Source of the DNA: Calcarisporiella thermophila CBS 279.70
Taxonomy: Eukaryota > Fungi > Calcarisporiellomycota
Direction of reading: 5' to 3'
Assembly: GCF_041956535.1 (NCBI RefSeq)
Contig: NW_027192192.1
Span: 1,119,796-1,183,795 of the forward strand
Length of the DNA: 64,000 nucleotides
This document shows positions 13,325 to 50,559 of this stretch, one piece after another; the first letter of the stretch is position 1; each line of letters starts with the position of its first letter. Under the pieces are notes generated by a model. It was not told the DNA's origin. It saw nothing but the letters and a program-made list of their open reading frames with translations, and made no database searches. The translations under genes were made by a program, and so were the position numbers.

Positions 13325-14587
13325 AATGAGGGTATTTGCAATCTGAAGACAAGAAATAAAATTAATATGTATTATTTTGTTTAAAAGAGTGTCAATTGGA
13401 TACTAAGGATCCAGAAAAAAAAAGGTATTCCTTTGGTTTACTTTTAGCTTAATTGAGCTCTAATTTTAAAGATTTTTCATATCCAGTTTTATGCCAACTG
13501 TAATAATCATTTGCAATTACATGCGTTCATGAGCCTCTAATTTAATCCACCTGGTAAGAAATAGTTATATTGCTTCTGGCCTACGGCCACTCTGCAAGCC
13601 AGCCCACGGTCAAACTAAAATTGCATTTCTGGCTCTCTTCTGCAAGCCTTGCGCTTACATTAAGATTCGCAACTAGGCTTTGCCCATGAGAAGATGTCAG
13701 CGGGAAAAGAAATGAACGACTGGCTTGGCAACCCTTATTTCTATCTCTCCACCTTGAGCAACAGGTGTCTCCAATAATAAAGAACGTTTGAAAAAACAAC
13801 ACCTATTATTCCCAAAATATACCCATAAATTAACGATTTTACCTATTGGGATAGGTGGGATAAAATCAAAAAGAATGGTTGGCTCGGAAATTATTAAACC
13901 CTCTAGACCTTAACTGGTCTTCGCTTTAACGATAACGAGTACTAGAGCGCTGTATGATGTTGGCTTTCAAAAGTCTCTGCTATTGAACATTGTGAGAGCA
14001 GGAAGCTGGGTATCACCATTGTGAGAATATTAGCATGTTGCAGAAGTCTCTTACGTAGTGCTTTGCCGATTTCCAAACTTCTACATATAGGATCGATTTT
14101 GAAATCTTCTATATCATGATATCGACACAAGTAATGATAATATTGCTAGAGTAATTAAGCCGGGTATATGACTAAGCCACAGCAAGCTCAATGTCCTCTC
14201 CGAGTTGCACCAAAATGCACTTGGGTGCGATGATTGTGTCATAATTACAATTTTATCACAGCCAACGCATCCGAGTTTGCGACAAAAAGGGTTATTTCGC
14301 CTGGTCTAGCCGTCCAATCGAGGATGACTACTTAAAAGAAAAATCTGGCATGATTTCTGGGATAGTATTTAGAAATTCTTTTTCCAGAACATAGCTGGGC
14401 AATCGAGCCAATACCAAATGTCTTGCGGAGGTATTGTCCAATGCCAAGAGCCAATCTGCAATTCAAAAAAGCCTATTGTTGAGTCAAGCAAAGTGAGTAG
14501 GAAACGGTAATGAGCTGTCGTATAAAAAGCTCATCACAATCCCCTGCACCATTACACGTGTTGTGGCATATAGTGCATTACCTCGCT

Positions 14588-15718
14588 ATGGCAAGACTGA
14601 TAACGCTGTTTCTTTTCACATTGTTATTCAATTTCATCGATGCAAAATTTCCACAATTGTCGCTGCCCAAGACGACTGGCCCACATAATGTCGGAACTAT
14701 TTCTACCGAGTTACTCGACGAAGCTCGATCTGATCCGTATGCCCCCTCTTCCCAAAAGCGTTCCCTTATGATCCAATTCTTCTACCCCACCAACACAACC
14801 AAGGGTTTCAAATTGGCGCCGTATATGTCTGCCGCAGCCGCACAATTCTATAATCAGCTTAGCAATCTGCCCAACAATACATTTGAGCAGTTCCAAGGAA
14901 GGTCCTATCTCGGGGCTCCAATCACCACTTCCAAGCTTCCAGTAGTGCTGTTTTCTCCCGGCATGGGAGTGTCCCGATTCCTTTACACCGCTATGGTGTC
15001 CAATCTTGCCAGCCAAGGTTATCTTGTGGTCGCCTTGGATCATCCATATGACGCAAGTATTGTGGAATACCCTGACGGCCGTGTGGTGCCGAGTGCATTT
15101 AATGCAAATCAAACTGTCGATGATATCCTGAAAGCAATGGAGGTGCGCTCTCAAGATGTCAGGTTCGTCTTGAATCAGCTAAGCCACCTCGCTAGCAGCA
15201 AAAAGATTCCCGGACTCAGTGGACCGATTAATGTTGAGCGCGTTGGGATGTTTGGTCACTCTTTAGGAGGCGCTACCGCCGCAAATGTGATGCTGAATGA
15301 TTCTAGGATTGCTGCAGGTTTCAATATGGACGGCTCATTTTTCGGACCTGTCATCAACCAAGGGCTGGATAAACCCTTTGCGCTCATGGGCGCTAGTGAT
15401 AACGGTGCCTTTGATGATGATTCATGGAATAAGACTTGGGCAAACCTACGCTCACGCCGAACAAGTCTCGTTCTTGCCAACTCAAGTCACTTCACTTTCT
15501 CCGATGGTCCGATCTGGACTGCCTTGCTAAACGCTTCAAAAGTGGATGTACCAGAGGGAATCACCTCATACATGGGCAAAATCAATGGGCTACGAGCTAA
15601 CACCGTTACGAATGCCTATATCACTGCCTTTTTCAATTCTATTTTACGAAATACTAGTGAACCACTCCTAGAAAAACCTGATCCACAGTTCCCCGAGATT
15701 ATATTCGATCGAGTATAG
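14588..15718 (+). CDS. Secreted alpha/beta hydrolase, PAF-acetylhydrolase-like family, intronless
   Basis: Signal peptide MARLITLFLFTLL; TGPHNVG; PVVLFSPG; LASQGYLVVALDHPYDA; GHSLGG; NMDG; HFTFSD. Confidence 0.9.
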   Translation: MARLITLFLFTLLFNFIDAKFPQLSLPKTTGPHNVGTISTELLDEARSDPYAPSSQKRSLMIQFFYPTNTTKGFKLAPYMSAAAAQFYNQLSNLPNNTFEQFQGRSYLGAPITTSKLPVVLFSPGMGVSRFLYTAMVSNLASQGYLVVALDHPYDASIVEYPDGRVVPSAFNANQTVDDILKAMEVRSQDVRFVLNQLSHLASSKKIPGLSGPINVERVGMFGHSLGGATAANVMLNDSRIAAGFNMDGSFFGPVINQGLDKPFALMGASDNGAFDDDSWNKTWANLRSRRTSLVLANSSHFTFSDGPIWTALLNASKVDVPEGITSYMGKINGLRANTVTNAYITAFFNSILRNTSEPLLEKPDPQFPEIIFDRV

Positions 15719-21655: not shown

Positions 21656-22643
21656 CCTCTTCTGCTATCTTTTTTGGTTTATGAAATAAATACAGGCAGG
21701 AGAAAAAGGAATGTATAAGGGCAAAAGAGCCTGAAGGAGTTGAAAAATACATGTGACTAAGGAGCCAAGGGTGAAATTCTGCCCTCAACCAATATTCAAA
21801 ATTTGAAACCCACAAACTGGCGAAATTCCTTTTCCTACCCCGCCGAACTATAAATTCAACTCAATTTCCCGCTCACTGGCTGTTCTTCACTCTCAGGCCT
21901 GAGCGCGAAGCATAACGATATTATTCTTTCGCCTTTTACTAAAGAATACCGTGTTTCGTGCTCATTAAGGGCCTTTTACAATTTTTTGTGCATTTTCTCT
22001 CTTTCGGAGGGAAAATAATTATTTAATAAGAGAAAAAAATAAGAGTTGAATTGAAGATGGCCAACAAGTATCTCCCTTGACTTCATCATCAAGATCTAGA
22101 AATATTCAGAAATAGTCCTTCTTCTATTTCGATCCTGGTTCTAAAAAAGGGAAGATTTAAAGGAGGCAAACCTGTCAACTATATTGCAATCTAAGAGGAA
22201 TAGAGGAGCGAATGAAACCTTTCGCTGAGAGATGGGCCAAACTGTAAAGGCCATTTAGAGTACGCGAAGGCATTTACGAATTCCCTCCTCCACTTCACTA
22301 AAGTGAGGATAGAATACTTCGAAGAGACACATTAGGCTCTAGAATATTGTATCAAGCGGGATCCCTTTAACCATGGTGTTGTTAGCCCAAGTGGAAGGGA
22401 GTTTAGAGAATAAAATATTCTTCTATTTGAGTAAAAGCACCACCAAGGAAAATTAATCAAGACAAGATATGGCGAGGATCCACCTGCCTTAAAAAGCGTG
22501 GTTTATGCTGTCTATCCTCCACACGCAATTAGATAAAAAGAAAATCTCTATATTTGCTCATTTTTCTCTCCTTGTTTCTTCTCTTTTTTCACGTCATTTA
22601 ACACAGAAGAACACAGACATCGCTCATTCCAGTGAAGAGGATA

Positions 22644-42243: not shown

Positions 42244-42325
42244 TGACGAGAGTGGGGTTCGAACCCACGCCTCCGAAGAGATCACGGCCTAAACGTGACG
42301 CCTTAGACCACTCGGCCATCTCGCC
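42244..42325 (-). tRNA. tRNA-Leu (anticodon UAG)
   Basis: GGCGAGATGGCCGAGTGGTCTAAGGCGTCACGTTTAGGCCGTGATCTCTTCGGAGGCGTGGGTTCGAACCCCACTCTCGTCA: full cloverleaf with long variable arm and a downstream T6 terminator. Confidence 0.96.
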
Positions 42326-42410
42326 TTAACAAGATACCGTGAGCAAAGAGACGTGTATTTTTTTTCTCTCTTGGGATGTTTTTTTTTATTTTTTTTTTTT
42401 ACAGACATCC

Positions 42411-42890
42411 ATCGCCTTTCATTTCGAAAGCACCCGAGCCTCACCCGAAATAATCATCAGCCGGGCCAAACTAGATATTGAGGAAGTGATAGGAGCCGAA
42501 CTAATCCGAGCACGAAAAAACCGGCAAATCGAACAGTTTCGAAGAAGGTGGTGCAAGCTGGGTGCGGTTAGAGAAGGAGCGATCGGAGCGGCACTGATAC
42601 TGGGATAACGCAGTAATCCCTACCTTATCCCCTTCCTATCCTCTATTTCCATTTGTTTACTCCCCACCCCACCTCTCATGTTATCCTTTGATATCCACGG
42701 TTAGTTGAGTTTCACCATTCCCTTACCTATTCGAGCTGAAAGTCGATATGACCAACATATCATTTCGATCTACGATATCACACAAAGCTTTAACTTTGGC
42801 TTCCCTTTCACTTTACTGCTTATAATAATGTAACAATTGTATTTTAGAGTCTTCCTATACAATAAAGACTCGGCATTGATCAAAAAAAAA
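42411..42890 (+). mobile_element. Heavily 5'-truncated non-LTR retrotransposon (copy A)
   Basis: Encodes IAFHFESTRASPEII...GAALILG*, like the copy B C-terminus. The 3' UTR ends TTGATC-A9. Flanked by a 20-bp TSD T10ACAGACATCC at 42391-42410 and 42891-42910. Confidence 0.93.
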
Positions 42891-42904
42891 TTTTTTTTTT
42901 ACAG

Positions 42905-45855
42905 ACATCCTCCTCAATCATGTAGACAAGGCTCTATCTACTGAAGCTCGTGGAAACCTGGAAGAACCCATCAGCGAAGAGGAGGTGAGGAGAGCCATTC
43001 GACTGGCTCCAAAGAACAAATCGCCCGGCCCGGACGGAATAACGGCGGAATTCTACCGAGCCTTCGAGGATGAGCTTGCCCCCACGATGCAACGACACTT
43101 TAACGAGGCCCTCACGACGGACAACCCCATAAACTTTTCGAAGAAAGCAACGATTGTCCTAATCTACAAGAGGAAAGGAGATGCTGAACTACTAAGCAAC
43201 TGGTGACCGATATCTCTCCTCAATGTGGACATCAAGCTCCTGACGAGAATACTCGCGTGGAGAATACAGAGAGTAATCGCGTCGATCATCCATCCCGACC
43301 AATGTGGCTTCGTCCCGGGACGTCAGGCACAGGAGAACGCCCTTACCATACACCAGACAATAGAATACGCAGCGAAAGAAAAGTGCTAAGGGACACTCTT
43401 GTTTCTTGACCAAGCGAAAGCCTACGACCGAGTAAGCTGGCGCTGGATGCAACAATGCCTGGAAAAATTCAACTTCGGTCCACGGTTCCGATCCTTCATC
43501 CAGCGCTTACACAGCGGATATCAAGCATCGGTGTCCATAAGTGGAACGCTCACAACTCCATTCCCAATTACAAGAGGGGTGAGACAAGGCGACCCCCTAT
43601 CCCCATATCTCTACAACATCACTGTTGAACCCCTGCTTATGACAATCAGGAGCAAGATACGGAGAATAGCTATCCCAGGACTCCCTCGGCCTACCACGAC
43701 ATTCGCGTACGCAGATGACCTGACCGTAGGAGTGGCTGACCAACAAGATGTCACCATTCTCTACCAGTTCATAGACACTTACTCGCGAGCGGCCGACGCG
43801 AAAATAAACATTGACAAAACGGAGGCCGTAGCACTTACACCCGCTGCCCGCACCTCCATCGACCCTGGATGTGAATACATACCTGCGGGGGGAGCAATCA
43901 CATGCCTCGGCATCCCAATCTATCTTCCGTCAGCAGTCAACCCCACCCTCATGCCAGGACACCCAAGTGAGGCATACTACACGAGCCAATTATCGAAACT
44001 GAGGCAGATGATCCAATCTTGGAAACTCAGCCTCATAGGGAAAGTCCACCTGATCAACTCCCGGCTCCTATCCAGGATATGGTACGTCGCCACAGTGATC
44101 CGCCCTCCTGAACATTTATTCAAAGAACTGGACACAATTGTACGACAATTTCTATGGGATGGACGAGGGCCGCAGATCAGCCTCAGTCTCCTGTCTAAAA
44201 CACGAGAGGAGGGAGGCCTAGGTCTCATTCTCCCTAGACAACAAACAAGTGCCTTACTCGCATCATGGTTCCCCAAACTCGCAAGAGAGATGAAGAAGCC
44301 AACATCGGACCCGACGGTATCCCTATGGGCAAGCATCTCACTTCTCAACTTGACAGGAAAGTATGCACCAGAAGGCTACGGCACAGCCATCTTTGCCACC
44401 ACGTTTTCCACGGTCAAACTCAAACGCAAAGGTGAGTTCTGGTTTAACCTGTTCCAAGCGTGGCACACGCTCGGAGGCAGTCCAGTGGCATCACCAAACT
44501 GGACTGCAACTGATGTCCTGTCCCTACCTCTCTACAAGTGCCCTCTAATCACAAACGAGGGCCGGCAGATGGAGGAGCCAAAACCCCCAACACCGCCATA
44601 CTTGCTCAATGAGGTTCTTACTTTTGTACGCTGGGGAGGACAAACCGAGTGCAGATCGCTCCATACTCAGGCTTTATTTGACGGGAATATTGGAAGACAA
44701 TCGGAAATGGAGCGTAGATACTCTGCGTATCCCACTGAAAAGCTAAGGAACGCGTGTCGCCGTCGTTACTGCAGCTACTCTCACAGATGGGACTACGGGT
44801 ATCTTAACCTACCCCCGAGTTTAGTTGCAAAGGTCACGGAGTGCACTGACATACCGCAACAACACCCTCACCCCTGTTTCCCACTCTATCATTGCCACCT
44901 GGCCGGCAGGCCCATAGCGGAATACTCTACCCGACATGGACGTCACTTCAGGCGCAACGGCTCTTTAGAGCCGAACATACTGGTGCCTCAATCCTGGCCC
45001 GAGGCTGGATCTACGCCCGAAGATTGGAAGAAAATCTGGACCCTCGTTCACAAACGCCCCACTCTCTCAAAGCACCGTGCGCTACGCTGGCGAATTCTTG
45101 TGGAACGAGTGATCACTAACTCGACATTTCCCGGTCACGACCCGAAGTGCATCCAATGCAACGCTTCGAGAGACACAATTCGCCATACATTCTTCGATTG
45201 TCCTGAACTCACGCCAGTGTGGCAATGGGCGGAGAGGTGCATCGTCACCATCGCAGGGCCCCAGAATACTCAGGTGCTGACTGCTCGCAACCTCATTTTA
45301 GGAGACCTAACGGAATCCTCGAGAACAGCGAGACACGTAGCCCAAATTGTCTTTGACTCCGGGTTATGGCAAATCCACCGAGACCGAATTGCCTTCCATT
45401 TTGAAAGCACCCGAGCCTCACCCGAAATAATCATCAACCGGGCCAGATTAGATATTGAGGAAGCTATAGGAGCCGAAATAATACGAGCACGAAAAAAACA
45501 GCAAATCGAACAGTTTCGAAAAAGGTGGTGCAAACTGGGCGCGGTTAGAGAAGGAACGATCGGAGCGGCTCTGATACTGGGATAATGCAGTAACCCCTAA
45601 TTTATCTCCTTCCTACCCTCTACTTCCTTTTTACTCTCCACCCCATATCTCACGTCATTCTTTGATATACAAAGCTAGTTGAGTCTCACCACTCCTCTAC
45701 CTTTTGAGCCGAAATCCGGCATGACCACCATTTCAATTCGTTCTAAAATATCCCCTTAAGCTTCAACATTAGTTTCCTCTTCACTTTATTGCTTCTATTA
45801 ATGTAACCATTGTACTTTAGAGTCTTTACAAAGACTCAACATTGATCAAAAAAAA
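42905..45855 (+). mobile_element. 5'-truncated L1/Tx1-like non-LTR retrotransposon (copy B): RT plus zf-RVT, two nonsense mutations
   Basis: KSPGPDG, NW*PISLLNVD.K, QCGFVPGR, LDQAKAYDRV, GVRQGDPLSP, YADD, GGLG and C..C...H.FF.C. The 3' end is TTGATC-A8. T9ACAG occurs on both sides (42892-42904 and 45856-45868). Confidence 0.95.
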
Positions 45856-45876
45856 TTTTTTTTTACAGGAGGGGGA

Positions 45877-45981
45877 TGTAACGTTGGAAACAGGAGATGT
45901 GTGGTAGGAGGGGATTATCTCAACTATCTGAGCGCTATCTCAAGTCGTCTGCTTATCCGTATGCAGATCCGCACTTAAGAT
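45877..45981 (-). repeat. 105-bp inverted copy of 47439-47543 (LTR 3' end)
   Basis: Reverse-complement match with 2 mismatches. Confidence 0.95.
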
Positions 45982-47129
45982 GGTCGATGTATTTACGGGA
46001 CTACGATTTCGTGGTACGACACCACAAGGGAGCCCTAAACCCAGCAGACGCACTTTCCGGACTACCGGTCAACTTTATCGGTGAAAATGAAGACGGAGTG
46101 GAGATAAACATCGAGGAAGGAAGAGAGAGTAAAGTAGGGGAGAGCGAAGTAGGGGAGAGCGACAGCGACGAAGAAGAGAGTGGCGATGACGGAGGAAACG
46201 GAGGCGAGGATATATCAACTGGCATCAACAGAGAGACACAGGACGATAGCGAACAAAGGCCAAGAGTACGACAAGCGATGGATCATGCGAAATGGAGCAC
46301 AATATACACTTATCTGACCGAGCTGCGATACCCTAACGGCTGCAACGAGAAATTTCGCCGAAAAATTCGGAGGTGGTCAGCAAAATACCGAGTGGAGGAC
46401 GGCAAGCTCTTCCTTCTAAAGACTCATGGAGAGTACCCTATCGAAGTTCTTCACACGGGCAACGTAGTGGATACGGTGCGGAGGATTCACCAAGAGGGAC
46501 ACTTCGGCATTAACAACACCTGGCGCAGAGCGAAGGAACGATTCACTGGACCCCAGCTATTCGAAGTGGTTGAGAGGATAGTCAAATGCTGTGACCGTTG
46601 TCAAGAGCGGAGGAACCGAGAAAAGACGGAAGAAATGCGACCGATAGAAGCGGGAAGGGTATTTGACATAGTGGGTATTGATGCAATCGGGCCGCTTCCA
46701 GTAACTCGGAGGGAAAATCGTTACATATTGGTCACGATAGACTATGTTAGCAGGTATCCTATGGCACGAGCGGTACCCAGCATCAGAACAGAAGATACGA
46801 TCGATTTCATATTTCAAGAGGTAATATCTCACTTTGGATGCCCTCGGCAACTAATATCTGACAGAGGGACCAACTTTCTGAGCGAGTTAATGGTACTGAG
46901 AGTCTTAGGGAAAGGAGCGTATATCCTTAGAGACGCAGCCGGCGCAACACTTCAGACTCCTGTCAACGGCCCAGAACGGGACGTGGGTATTCAACGATCA
47001 AAGGGAGATTCACCTAATTGATGATGGGGACACTGGGGATTACGAGGAGGCGCTTAGAAAATGGTTCGAAGAACTGTTTTCCGAAGAAGAGGCCGCTACG
47101 GGGACGCTAGCTTTATATGAGGGGGGATC

Positions 47130-47543
47130 TGTTACGACGAGAATAGGGTAACGTGGAGCATAAGTTTGTGACGGCGTTTTTGGGATTCGATATCTTTCAA
47201 AGAAGATGCATATTTTAGTTTTACTGAGTATTACCATTTTAGTTTTATTGAGGATTTTTCTTTGTTTTATTGAATAGTAGCAACAGCTATAGTCCTATTG
47301 AATATTGAGCTATTCTTTGATTATTTGTTATGAGTCATAGTTTTATCTAGCATTATTATGAAAAGGGTGATAACTTTTATGTAATAAAGTAAGGATTCAA
47401 AGTTCTATTTTCTTGATACCAAGTTCTCGGCATCTCCTATCTTAAGTGCGGATCTGCATACGGATAAGCAGACTACTTGAGATAGCGCTCAGATAGTTGA
47501 GATAATCCCCTCCTACCACACATCTCCTGTTTCCAACGTAACA
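47130..47543 (+). repeat. 3' LTR (414 bp)
   Basis: Follows the PPT, starts TGTTACG, ends CGTAACA and contains AATAAA. Confidence 0.85.
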
Positions 47544-47567
47544 GGAAACAAAGGGGGTGGCAAAGGG

Positions 47568-47642
47568 GGTGGGGTAGCTTAGTGGTAAGCGCTCCTCGAT
47601 GCCATCGAGATGGCGCGGGTTCGAATCCCGTAGCCCTCACCA
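47568..47642 (+). pseudogene. tRNA-Gly(GCC)-like sequence (pseudo-tRNA or SINE head)
   Basis: A box TAGCTTAGTGG, anticodon arm CTCG-ATGCCAT-CGAG, B box GGTTCGAATCC and acceptor GGTGGGG/CCTCACC. Extra bases between the arms break the canonical cloverleaf. Confidence 0.7.
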
Positions 47643-48927
47643 GCACAAACCTCACCAGCACAAAAAAAGTGTCTTGATTCTCCACTAATTCTGTGCCTTG
47701 TTTGTCGTATCTATATTCTCTATCAGCATTATCTACCTTTTCCAGTCTGGTTCTCTACAATTACTCTCTCCGTCCTGTCGTGTCGGGCTCTTCCTCTAGT
47801 ATTGCCTCTGTCTTGTCGTGCCTGGTCTTTCCATCGTTACTGTCTCTCATTACTGTCCCTCGCTTGCCGTACCTGTCGTGTCTGGTTTTTTATACTTGTT
47901 GTGTCTGGTTTTCTCTGCTCGTCGTGTCTGATTACTCTACAATTTCATTTTCTTAATTGTTCTCTAACTTCTGCCAGCAATTGGCTATAATCTGCACAAA
48001 GATATATGACCTTTGATTCACCTTCAACGATTAACTTCATGAGGATACTTTTCAGTAAAGATCCGTAGCTTCAAAAAAAAAAGTGTGATGGGTTCGATTC
48101 CCGGTGATGGCACCGGTACTAGAGATGTGACCGGGACATACTCTAGGAATTGAACTATAAGCTGCTTCGCTACGACTCCTCCGAAATGCAGTATAATACT
48201 CAATGTTACTTCTCCATATATACTTCTTATTCTTTGGATACTGGTAGACAACAGAAAAACAAGAAATTCCATGCGAATTGGGGGTGTACAAACCTTTCAT
48301 TTAGCTTGTATAGGAGATTTTTCAATAAGATCCTTTAAAATAAATACATCCACATCACATCTTTGCGCTAAATCTCGAATAAGTAGGCCAGGAGCATTAT
48401 CTGGGTGATTTTGACGTAGAAGTCTACCCTACTGTTCATATGTATAGGGATCACTTTTAATAAAATCATGTGAAATGATAAAAAACAATTTTTTTACAAC
48501 CACTTGGTTTTATCAGACCTTCCCATAGCAATTAAAGGACAATGGATAAAAACACAGAGGAAAAATGCTGGAGAACATGGAGAACAAAAATGGATACTTT
48601 TTTTGTAAATACCCTCCTGACAAAAAAAACTTTGATCATTTTTTTATCTTTATTTCTTTAACTGATCCAGTGAGAATATTTATTATTTTACGATGATTAT
48701 TACAGCAATCTTTTTCTGTTATAACTTTATTATATTGAGATGATACTGTTTTATTACTTTTATTATCAATATTTTCCCTATGTGATACGTTAACAACAGT
48801 ATTAAAGACCGATATTTCATTTACAATAAAGATGTGCTTTTATTATTATCCGATTACATGACTATCCTTTGCATCGTCTAAGACTGCTCAAGTGGTGAAT
48901 ATAGAGCGATAGAGAGAGAAATCATCA

Positions 48928-49410
48928 AAGGACGCGAGGACTTGCATCCTGTGGTTTATTTAAACTATATTACATGTGAGGGAGTCTTCTGAACAAGATT
49001 GTTAGGTACAAGAAAACACAGGAAAATGCTTAGAGTTCCGTACTTGAAAGGGTCAGATTAGGTATTTTTTACTTCCTCGAGATCGAAAACTACTGCTTGG
49101 TTATCATCGATCCGGATTAGCAAGTTCTTTCCTCATTCCTACTTTAAATTTTCTTGAGCTTTATTCCTCTGAGGGGGCAAAATCCAAGCCTTTTTTATTT
49201 TCCTCTAAGGACGCGAGAACTTACGTCCTGTGGTTTATTTAATATATATTACAAATGTGAGACATGCTTCCGAACAAGCTTATTAAGTACTAGAAAACAT
49301 GAGGATATAATTTAAAGAGTTCCGTGCTTGGAAATGTCGGATTAGGCGTTCTTTGCTTCCCCGAAATCGAGGACTACCTCTTGGCTGTCATCGATCTAGA
49401 TTAGCGAGCT
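48928..49410. repeat. Two diverged ~200-bp direct repeats (48928-49136 and 49207-49410), probably 3' ends of a minus-strand retroposon
   Basis: Both begin aaggacgcgag..ctt...tcctgtggtttatttaa and align through tcatcgatc..gattagc. AATAAA is present on the minus strand. The second unit is flanked by caaaatccaagcct. Confidence 0.75.
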
Positions 49411-49427
49411 GACAAAATCCAAGCCTC

Positions 49428-50401
49428 TTTTTTTTTGATCAACCTACGGAGACTTTTATTAGTTTCCGTAGCTTACAAGAGTTTAATGATTACAATGAAA
49501 TAAGAAAAGGGGGGAATAAAGGGTAAATTAGATGTATATAGTGATCGGGTATTTGGTGAAAGGTATGAGGTAAAGAGGAGGGGAGGAGGGAAAGAGCGGA
49601 TTGGGAGAGAGGAAGGGTTGCTTCGTCACTCCAGTTTTAGTANNNNNNNNNNNNNNNNNNNNNNNNNNNNNNNNNNNNNNNNNNNNNNNNNNNNNNNNNN
49701 NNNNNNNNNNNNNNNNNNNNNNNNNNNNNNNNNNNNNNNNNNNNNNNNNNNNNNNNNNNNNNNNNNNNNNNNNNNNNNNNNNNNNNNNNNNNNNNNNNNN
49801 NNNNNNNNNNNNNNNNNNNNNNNNNNNNNNNNNNNNNNNNNNNNNNNNNNNNNNNNNNNNNNNNNNNNNNNNNNNNNNNNNNNNNNNNNNNNNNNNNNNN
49901 NNNNNNNNNNNNNNNNNNNNNNNNNNNNNNNNNNNNNNNNNNNNNNNNNNNNNNNNNNNNNNNNNNNNNNNNNNNNNNNNNNNNNNNNNNNNNNNNNNNN
50001 NNNNNNNNNNNNNNNNNNNNNNNNNNNNNNNNNNNNNNNNNNNNNNNNNNNNNNNNNNNNNNNNNNNNNNNNNNNNNNNNNNNNNNNNNNNNNNNNNNNN
50101 NNNNNNNNNNNNNNNNNNNNNNNNNNNNNNNNNNNNNNNNNNNNNNNNNNNNNNNNNNNNNNNNNNNNNNNNNNNNNNNNNNNNNNNNNNNNNNNNNNNN
50201 NNNNNNNNNNNNNNNNNNNNNNNNNNNNNNNNNNNNNNNNNNNNNNNNNNNNNNNNNNNNNNNNNNNNNNNNNNNNNNNNNNNNNNNNNNNNNNNNNNNN
50301 NNNNNNNNNNNNNNNNNNNNNNNNNNNNNNNNNNNNNNNNNNNNNNNNNNNNNNCTCCCTGTCGGGTGGAGTATTCCGGGACGGGCGCGCCAGCCAGGTG
50401 A
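49428..50401 (-). mobile_element. 5'-truncated non-LTR retrotransposon (copy C), spanning an assembly gap
   Basis: The 5' stub encodes HLAGAPVPEYSTRQG (copy B has HLAGRPIAEYSTRHG). The 3' end is TTGATC-A9 on the minus strand. 17-bp TSD gacaaaatccaagcctc at 49411-49427 and 50402-50418. Confidence 0.88.
49643..50353. other. Assembly gap (N run) inside LINE copy C
   Basis: Run of n. Confidence 1.
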
Positions 50402-50487
50402 GACAAAATCCAAGCCTCCACCCAAACCCTACTGCGCCATAAATTCATATTTTACCAACTTTTCTTGCAACAAGCTTGCAAATGATT

Positions 50488-50559
50488 GGCTCAATGGTCT
50501 AGTAGTATGATTCTCCGTTCGGGTCGGAGAGGTCCCGGGTTCAATTCCCGGTTGAGCCC
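50488..50559 (+). tRNA. tRNA-Pro (anticodon CGG)
   Basis: GGCTCAATGGTCTAGTAGTATGATTCTCCGTTCGGGTCGGAGAGGTCCCGGGTTCAATTCCCGGTTGAGCCC: all stems form; the D-loop has AG in place of the usual GG. Confidence 0.9.

Follow-up and report, generated by a model that had tools for sequence, protein, structure and literature searches.

Why should every copy of a set of retroelement repeats detected in a long stretch of fungal DNA lie between two transfer RNA (tRNA) genes, and what determines the position of each copy there? The question is raised by a stretch of 64,000 nucleotides (nt) from Calcarisporiella thermophila, hereafter the window, and is followed through the 28-Mb genome of this fungus, to which all genome-wide counts refer. 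A tRNA-Leu(TAG) gene (42244-42325, minus strand; ARAGORN; RF00005, 57.6 bits) and a tRNA-Pro(CGG) gene (50488-50559, plus strand; ARAGORN and Rfam, 55 bits) stand with their 5′ ends opposed across 8.2 kb, a layout on which ARAGORN and Rfam are concordant. BLAST of the window with a small library confined to long interspersed element (LINE), short interspersed element (SINE) and long terminal repeat (LTR) sequences yields no copies beyond 42.2-50.6 kb, and every repeat copy detected with this library lies inside the interval between the two genes. Three of these copies belong to a non-LTR retrotransposon family. We consider it very probable that this is an L1-superfamily LINE family whose integration site is set relative to tRNA genes and independently of target sequence, and whose proteins would dock on the RNA polymerase III (Pol III) complex. 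The anatomy of the elements, their distance and orientation, their stacking and target duplications, the motif-free targets and the generality of the arrangement across the genome are direct observations on which this answer is built.

Three LINE copies facing two tRNA genes

The plus-strand stack, whose target gene is tRNA-Leu, contains two 5′-truncated copies of subfamily I. Copy A (42411-42890, plus strand; 480 nt) ends in TTGATC-A9 and is flanked by a 20-nt target duplication (T10ACAGACATCC), whose tRNA-proximal copy (42391-42410, plus strand) starts 65 nt from the tRNA 5′ end; the 5′ junction of the element is at 85 nt. Copy B (42905-45855, plus strand; 2.95 kb) codes for a reverse transcriptase (RT) and a zf-RVT domain, with two in-frame stops, and its distal target duplication (45856-45868, plus strand) reads T9ACAG. 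A Pfam domain search finds no endonuclease domain in copy B, which identifies it as 5′-truncated. The distal duplication of A (42891-42910, plus strand) overlaps the proximal duplication of B (T9ACAG) together with the first 6 nt of B, and since the duplication of A is thus made up of B's duplication and the beginning of B itself, A inserted later than B. When A is subtracted, the duplication of B starts ~65-66 nt from tRNA-Leu, its 5′ junction lies at ~79 nt, and the first nick of A falls within one nucleotide of the first nick of B.

The minus-strand stack has tRNA-Pro as its target gene. Its LINE member, copy C (49428-50401, minus strand), belongs to subfamily II and is 5′-truncated at about position B1986 of open reading frame (ORF) 2. 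The tRNA-proximal copy of its 17-nt target duplication (GAGGCTTGGATTTTGTC; 50402-50418, minus strand) is 69 nt from the tRNA-Pro 5′ end, the distal copy (GAGGCTTGGATTTTGTC; 49411-49427, minus strand) lies at the opposite end of the element, and the 5′ junction is at 86 nt. This duplication includes that of an older, shorter repeat, D. Copy C contains an assembly gap (49643-50354), flanked on the tRNA side by 47 nt of ORF2 and on the other side by 214 nt of the subfamily II 3′ end. Both flanks are colinear, on the same strand, with an uninterrupted subfamily II copy in L029 (445-490 and 1120 to the end), one of the loci retrieved genome-wide (L001-L035, see below). By this mapping ~629 nt would be missing from C, compared with 712 N in the assembly. 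The comparison supports the view that copy C is continuous across the gap and is an ordinary 5′-truncated copy with a true length of ~0.9 kb; its intact equivalent is found at L022:255-1103.

The terminus TTGATC-poly(A) is common to A, B and C, although their 3′ ends are of two types (subfamily I in A and B, subfamily II in C), and the target of A and B has no sequence relation to that of C. The original prediction, drawn from the DNA of the window, had recognized the common terminus of three related copies, the opposition of the 5′ end of each copy to a tRNA 5′ end and all of the distances (65, ~66 and 69 nt to the duplications; 85, ~79 and 86 nt to the junctions), and these hold. It also took diverged 3′ untranslated regions (UTRs) of A, B and C as a sign of several subfamilies; there are at least two, with A and B in the same one. 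An assembly artefact as the source of the arrangement is ruled out, as the junctions are contiguous and carry duplications; the tRNA being part of the element is likewise ruled out, as the duplications separate the two and the tRNA types differ.

The coding capacity of the family is best seen in a 5.1-kb copy in locus L019 (contig C3), in which Pfam detects Exo_endo_phos (1.8e-8) followed by RVT_1 in ORF2. The N-terminal half of this ORF2 gives a single alignment to residues 7-572 of human L1 ORF2p (4e-53), and in copy B zf-RVT (PF13966, 2.5e-7) follows the RT at the C-terminus. Upstream of ORF2, the L019 copy retains part of ORF1, namely 199 C-terminal residues that include a CCHC knuckle. 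This fragment has no Pfam match and aligns to residues 171-228, the knuckle region, of the ORF1 of a metagenomic relative, which indicates that ~170 ORF1 residues and the 5′ UTR are missing from the L019 copy. ORF1 precedes ORF2, the elements end in poly(A), 5′ truncation is variable and target duplications measure 11-25 nt, all traits of L1-type elements, and the two subfamilies combine distinct 3′ UTRs with the common TTGATC-poly(A) terminus. The family is accordingly an L1-superfamily (L1/Tx1 group) non-LTR retrotransposon with at least two subfamilies.

At least eight independent copies (L008, L015, L016, L017, L018, L022, L028 and window copy C) are 5′-truncated within one 75-nt stretch of ORF2, ~930-990 nt from the 3′ end, where the RT may preferentially stop or an internal start may lie.

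Distance and orientation across the genome

A DNA search with copy B returned 60 matches, and 35 loci (L001-L035, ~250 kb in total), many of whose flanks reach assembly gaps, were examined; they contain 38 genuine tRNAs (Rfam). Twelve insertions with clear duplications lie upstream of 12 different tRNA genes, all head-to-head, with the duplication starting 60-72 nt from the tRNA, the 5′ junction at 74-97 nt (mostly 79-86) and a duplication length of 13-25 nt. In a thirteenth case, L022, the duplication is weaker, measures 11 nt and starts at 81 nt. Junctions defined by BLAST edges place 21 cases at 68-97 nt. In L013 and L017 the spacing is 499 nt and includes the same 414-nt solo LTR, itself bounded by a 4-nt duplication; with the LTR subtracted, the SINE junction and the LINE junction lie at 81 nt in both loci.

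Orientation is equally regular. No adjacent LINE or SINE copy in the opposite orientation occurs among the adjacent cases of the 35 loci and the window, and among 58 LINE/SINE intervals located upstream of a tRNA in their flank, 52 are directed at such a tRNA. Gaps or contig ends adjoin each of the other six, one of which, in L004, does point to a tRNA further along the contig. Later insertions return to the first-nick position of earlier ones to within 1-2 nt (A and B; C and D).

The same site is used by a SINE, a 338-nt unit with no ORF that consists of a tRNA-like head with A and B boxes (TAGTGTAGTGG and GGTTCAAATCC), a body and a LINE-type tail. Over its last ~60 nt it is 81-84% identical to the tail of LINE subfamily II, the terminus itself being identical, and its target duplications measure 15-19 nt. 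It is a tRNA-derived SINE, paired with LINE subfamily II through the 3′ tail. From 188 candidates 40 were scored, and the full-length copies among these are 94-99% identical to the query copy. The constant 5′ end of the SINE makes possible an unbiased pattern test of the whole genome: a 13-mer from the SINE head occurs 106 times, and at 29 of these heads a tRNA T-loop motif is found at head-to-head spacing (tRNA ~80 nt away), whereas neither a reversed control pattern nor the opposite tRNA orientation next to a SINE head has a single match genome-wide. At G000:C38:117566-117645 two SINE heads are opposed across ~52 nt, too little to accommodate a tRNA; one SINE may have inserted here upstream of the head of another.

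Taken over the loci and the window, the arrangement is found at 23 tRNA genes of many isoacceptor types, with five of the 29 pattern matches falling in these loci, and comparison of coordinates with a partial tRNA list contributes more cases, at 80-90 nt. In total the arrangement is seen at about 50 distinct tRNA genes, and both the pattern test and the distances in the loci place it far beyond chance genome-wide. Mapping of genomic copies against tRNA genes, which the original prediction had proposed as its check, thus yields a sharp head-to-head peak and no case of opposite orientation.

Most runs of N in L001-L035 have LINE or SINE sequence as their exact boundary on at least one side, which suggests that many scaffold gaps of this assembly are probably collapsed copies of these elements.

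Target position, target sequence and a possible mechanism

The distances and duplications can be accommodated by a single insertion geometry. Reckoned from the mature tRNA 5′ end, a first nick would be made ~60-72 nt upstream (about -65) in the strand bearing the tRNA sequence, as in target-primed reverse transcription, and a second nick 13-25 nt further out (about -82). With this geometry every copy, whatever its 5′ truncation, has its 5′ end opposed to the tRNA at ~74-97 nt, and repeated insertions give rise to stacks of uniform orientation in which the youngest element lies closest to the tRNA. The SINE is coding-free and shares only its last ~60 nt with LINE II, yet it uses the same site in the same orientation, so the choice of site must fall to LINE proteins that act in trans. 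By analogy with TRE5-A of Dictyostelium, these proteins may dock on the Pol III pre-initiation complex, with TFIIIB as the likeliest partner and the nick falling just beyond its upstream edge.

Direct recognition of DNA or chromatin, in which A and B box DNA, TFIIIC, Pol III itself or a positioned upstream nucleosome rather than TFIIIB would guide a cut at fixed distance, is the most serious alternative, though an unlikely one. It agrees with a distance fixed relative to the tRNA gene, the present data do not single out TFIIIB, and Ty1 offers a precedent for the use of a Pol III subunit and nucleosomes (PMC5911963). However, the A box is ~75-85 bp away from the cut, a long way for its DNA to be read directly, and the single, sharp and strictly oriented peak is unlike the periodic ~1-kb window of Ty1.

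Whether the endonuclease might instead read a sequence is complicated by a second class of repeats at the same genes. Repeat edges are found 6-17 nt upstream of many tRNAs, with LTRs in both orientations. Among them are the 414-nt solo LTRs of L013 (5115-5528) and L017 (2521-2934), which begin and end with TGTTG...CAACA, carry the 4-nt duplication, are 99% identical and are separated by 9 and 14 nt from the tRNA-Leu(AAG) and tRNA-Pro(AGG) downstream of them, respectively. The second site, 6-17 nt upstream of tRNAs, is thus that of a Ty3-like LTR element, and many LINE and SINE targets fall inside solo LTRs at this site, with the result that some duplicated targets are homologous to one another (L003 with that of the window tRNA-Pro; L016 with L030). 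An endonuclease specific for a motif in LTRs or flanks that happen to lie upstream of tRNA genes would account for the many targets in LTR-like sequence, for these homologous duplications and for a nick at LTR coordinate ~54 in two LTR families. It is nevertheless very improbable, given that the two LTR families show no sequence relation to each other around the nick, that aligned target sites reveal no consensus at either nick, and that unique or pre-LTR flanks (L008, L013, L017, L019, L034 and the window tRNA-Leu) receive insertions at this distance too, where the duplications are unrelated. The absence of a motif common to the targets makes the specificity positional, as the original prediction had proposed from the unrelated targets of A/B and C. 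To this must be added that duplicated targets lying in solo LTRs can be homologous to one another. Unrelated LTR families and unique flanks are nonetheless used at one distance, which is most simply explained by a ruler whose anchor is close to the Pol III start site. Random insertion followed by purifying selection that spares only copies in harmless tRNA-upstream DNA is hardly credible: it would suit a compact genome and the finding of all window repeats between two tRNA genes, but it cannot yield precision of a few nucleotides, strict orientation (29 versus 0) or reuse of nicks within 1-2 nt, and the pattern is already present in SINE copies 94-99% identical to the query copy.

Several points weigh against a ruler set by the Pol III complex. 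LTR-like sequence harbours about half of the SINE targets, and since the two LTR families are nicked at the same coordinate, a contribution of the LTR ends or of the transcription start is inseparable there from the distance to the mature tRNA. Among 29 informative 3′ ends in the loci examined, 14 needed case-by-case reading as members of a stack. At a 5S-like match (G000:C5:1186712-1186848, 47.8 bits) a SINE head lies ~10 nt upstream, head-to-head, instead of the ~80 nt typical of tRNAs, a spacing at odds with a simple TFIIIB ruler, and a search for 5S ribosomal RNA genes gave four matches with no clear LINE or SINE at ~80 nt. Contact with any Pol III factor would, moreover, be postulated by analogy with TRE5-A.

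With these points in mind, docking on the Pol III complex can be developed into a more specific and more tentative proposal, to which we give somewhat less than even weight: LINE targeting of tRNA genes would have arisen independently in an early-diverging fungus, its determinant would act in trans on SINE RNA and most simply reside in ORF2p rather than ORF1p, and fungal TFIIIB would have its upstream edge where the nicks fall, at about -65 and -82. A determinant in ORF2p would differ from the ORF1p-TFIIIB model proposed for TRE5-A.

Known tRNA-targeted elements and the remaining features of the window

The closest known system is TRE5-A, together with TRE5-B, TRE5-C and NLTR-B of Polysphondylium. 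In Dictyostelium discoideum, TRE5-A inserts ~50 bp upstream of tRNA genes and its ORF1p binds TFIIIB subunits (PMC3159450, PMC5911963), while an LTR element of the same genome uses a site closer to the tRNA (PMC3159450, PMC5006619, PMC5911963). TRE5-A and the fungal LINE are alike in being non-LTR elements with endonuclease, RT and zinc-finger domains and the same orientation to the tRNA. They differ in spacing, the 5′ junction of the fungal LINE lying at ~74-97 nt (mostly 79-86) compared with ~40-54 nt in the TRE5 group, ~30 nt further out; in host, which is a fungus rather than an amoebozoan; and in the abundant tRNA-derived SINE that shares the targeting in the fungus. The ORF1 of the fungal LINE also has a CCHC knuckle, in contrast to TRE ORF1 proteins, which reportedly have no similarity to anything else.

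Pol III genes likewise serve as safe havens for Ty3 of Saccharomyces cerevisiae, Tj1 and DGLT-A, and the Calcarisporiella LTR family, 6-17 nt upstream of mature tRNA ends, resembles Ty3 in this respect. Ty3, Tj1 and DGLT-A use an integrase at the transcription start, in either orientation, whereas the fungal LINE and SINE would use target-primed reverse transcription ~50 nt further upstream and are found in one orientation. Tx1-group LINEs such as Keno, Mutsu and Dewa are endonuclease-type elements associated with small-RNA genes; they insert into a specific sequence inside a repeated gene, whereas the fungal LINE leaves the gene intact and its target sequence varies. Zorro3 and Mucor Grem-LINE1 are, like it, fungal L1-superfamily elements with insertion biases; Grem-LINE1 is associated with centromeres, and to our knowledge neither has been linked to tRNA genes. 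Zorro3 of Candida albicans targets poly(A) tracts (PMC7175516).

A comparative study of 2016 and reviews of 2018 and 2026 place tRNA-targeted non-LTR elements only in dictyostelids, and in fungi LTR elements only (PMC5006619, PMC5911963, PMC13269885), and the searchable literature on Calcarisporiella and Mucoromycota holds no description of tRNA-targeted non-LTR elements. The closest relatives of the LINE outside this genome are 25-35% identical; those with a source name are not dictyostelid, and most have no source name. The elements most likely represent a second lineage of tRNA-targeted non-LTR retrotransposons, independent of the dictyostelid one. The flanks examined of the three nearest foreign LINE relatives (L036-L038) contain no tRNA, which hints that tRNA targeting is lineage-specific. 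Targeting of tRNA genes by non-LTR elements is already known, and the new aspects are the same logic as in TRE5 in a different kingdom, with another spacing and a SINE partner.

If the lineage is indeed independent, it would show clearly that 'safe-haven' strategies have evolved convergently, here in a compact genome and with a Ty3-like element at the neighbouring site. It lends itself to asking, by natural comparison, which component of the Pol III machinery is read by a target-primed element, and it allows a LINE and a SINE to be set side by side at one precise site. The targeting would also explain the piles of retroelements between tRNA genes and many of the assembly gaps of this genome.

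The remaining repeats detected in the window lie between the same two tRNA genes. Beyond copy B lies a rearranged Ty3/gypsy fragment (45877-47556), in which an integrase ORF (45897-47021; Integrase_H2C2, rve) is placed between inverted LTR pieces. The fragment has a 94% match to L011 (5560-5971), and a link between its integrase and the LTR family beside tRNA genes is partly established. Its right-hand LTR end is 12 nt upstream of a tRNA-like head at 47569, which belongs to a second tRNA-headed, SINE-like element, SINE-Gly (47565-48082, plus strand), ending in A10; ARAGORN calls the head a tRNA-Gly(GCC), at only 32 bits. The LTR end at this spacing suggests that the SINE-Gly head may still assemble a Pol III complex. 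Copies of SINE-Gly are present in five other loci, among them a copy in L020 that is head-to-head with tRNA-Leu(AAG) and begins 90 nt upstream of it. The retroelement complement sharing this arrangement thus includes at least one tRNA-derived SINE family and probably a second.

In the minus-strand stack, the outer member is copy E of a repeat named DE (48922-49171, minus strand). Copy D of the same repeat (49192-49412, minus strand) is flanked by a ~14-nt duplication (AGGCTTGGATTTTG); it shares its site with C and inserted before it. The DE repeat is ~215-255 nt long with an A-rich tail other than TTGATC, has further copies in L010, L012, L016, L019, L021, L022 and L029, and follows the orientation of the local stack in most of its loci. 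Directly adjoining SINE-Gly, a short repeat at 48083-48172 contains a stretch resembling a tRNA 3′ half (GGTTCGATTCC) and recurs in L003, L010, L022 and L031.

Outside the interval between the two tRNA genes, the window carries a U5 spliceosomal RNA gene (21895-22014, 84.9 bits) with no library repeats nearby, and a single-exon gene of the PAF-acetylhydrolase family (14510-15718), whose closest named homologue, in Basidiobolus ranarum, is 50% identical.

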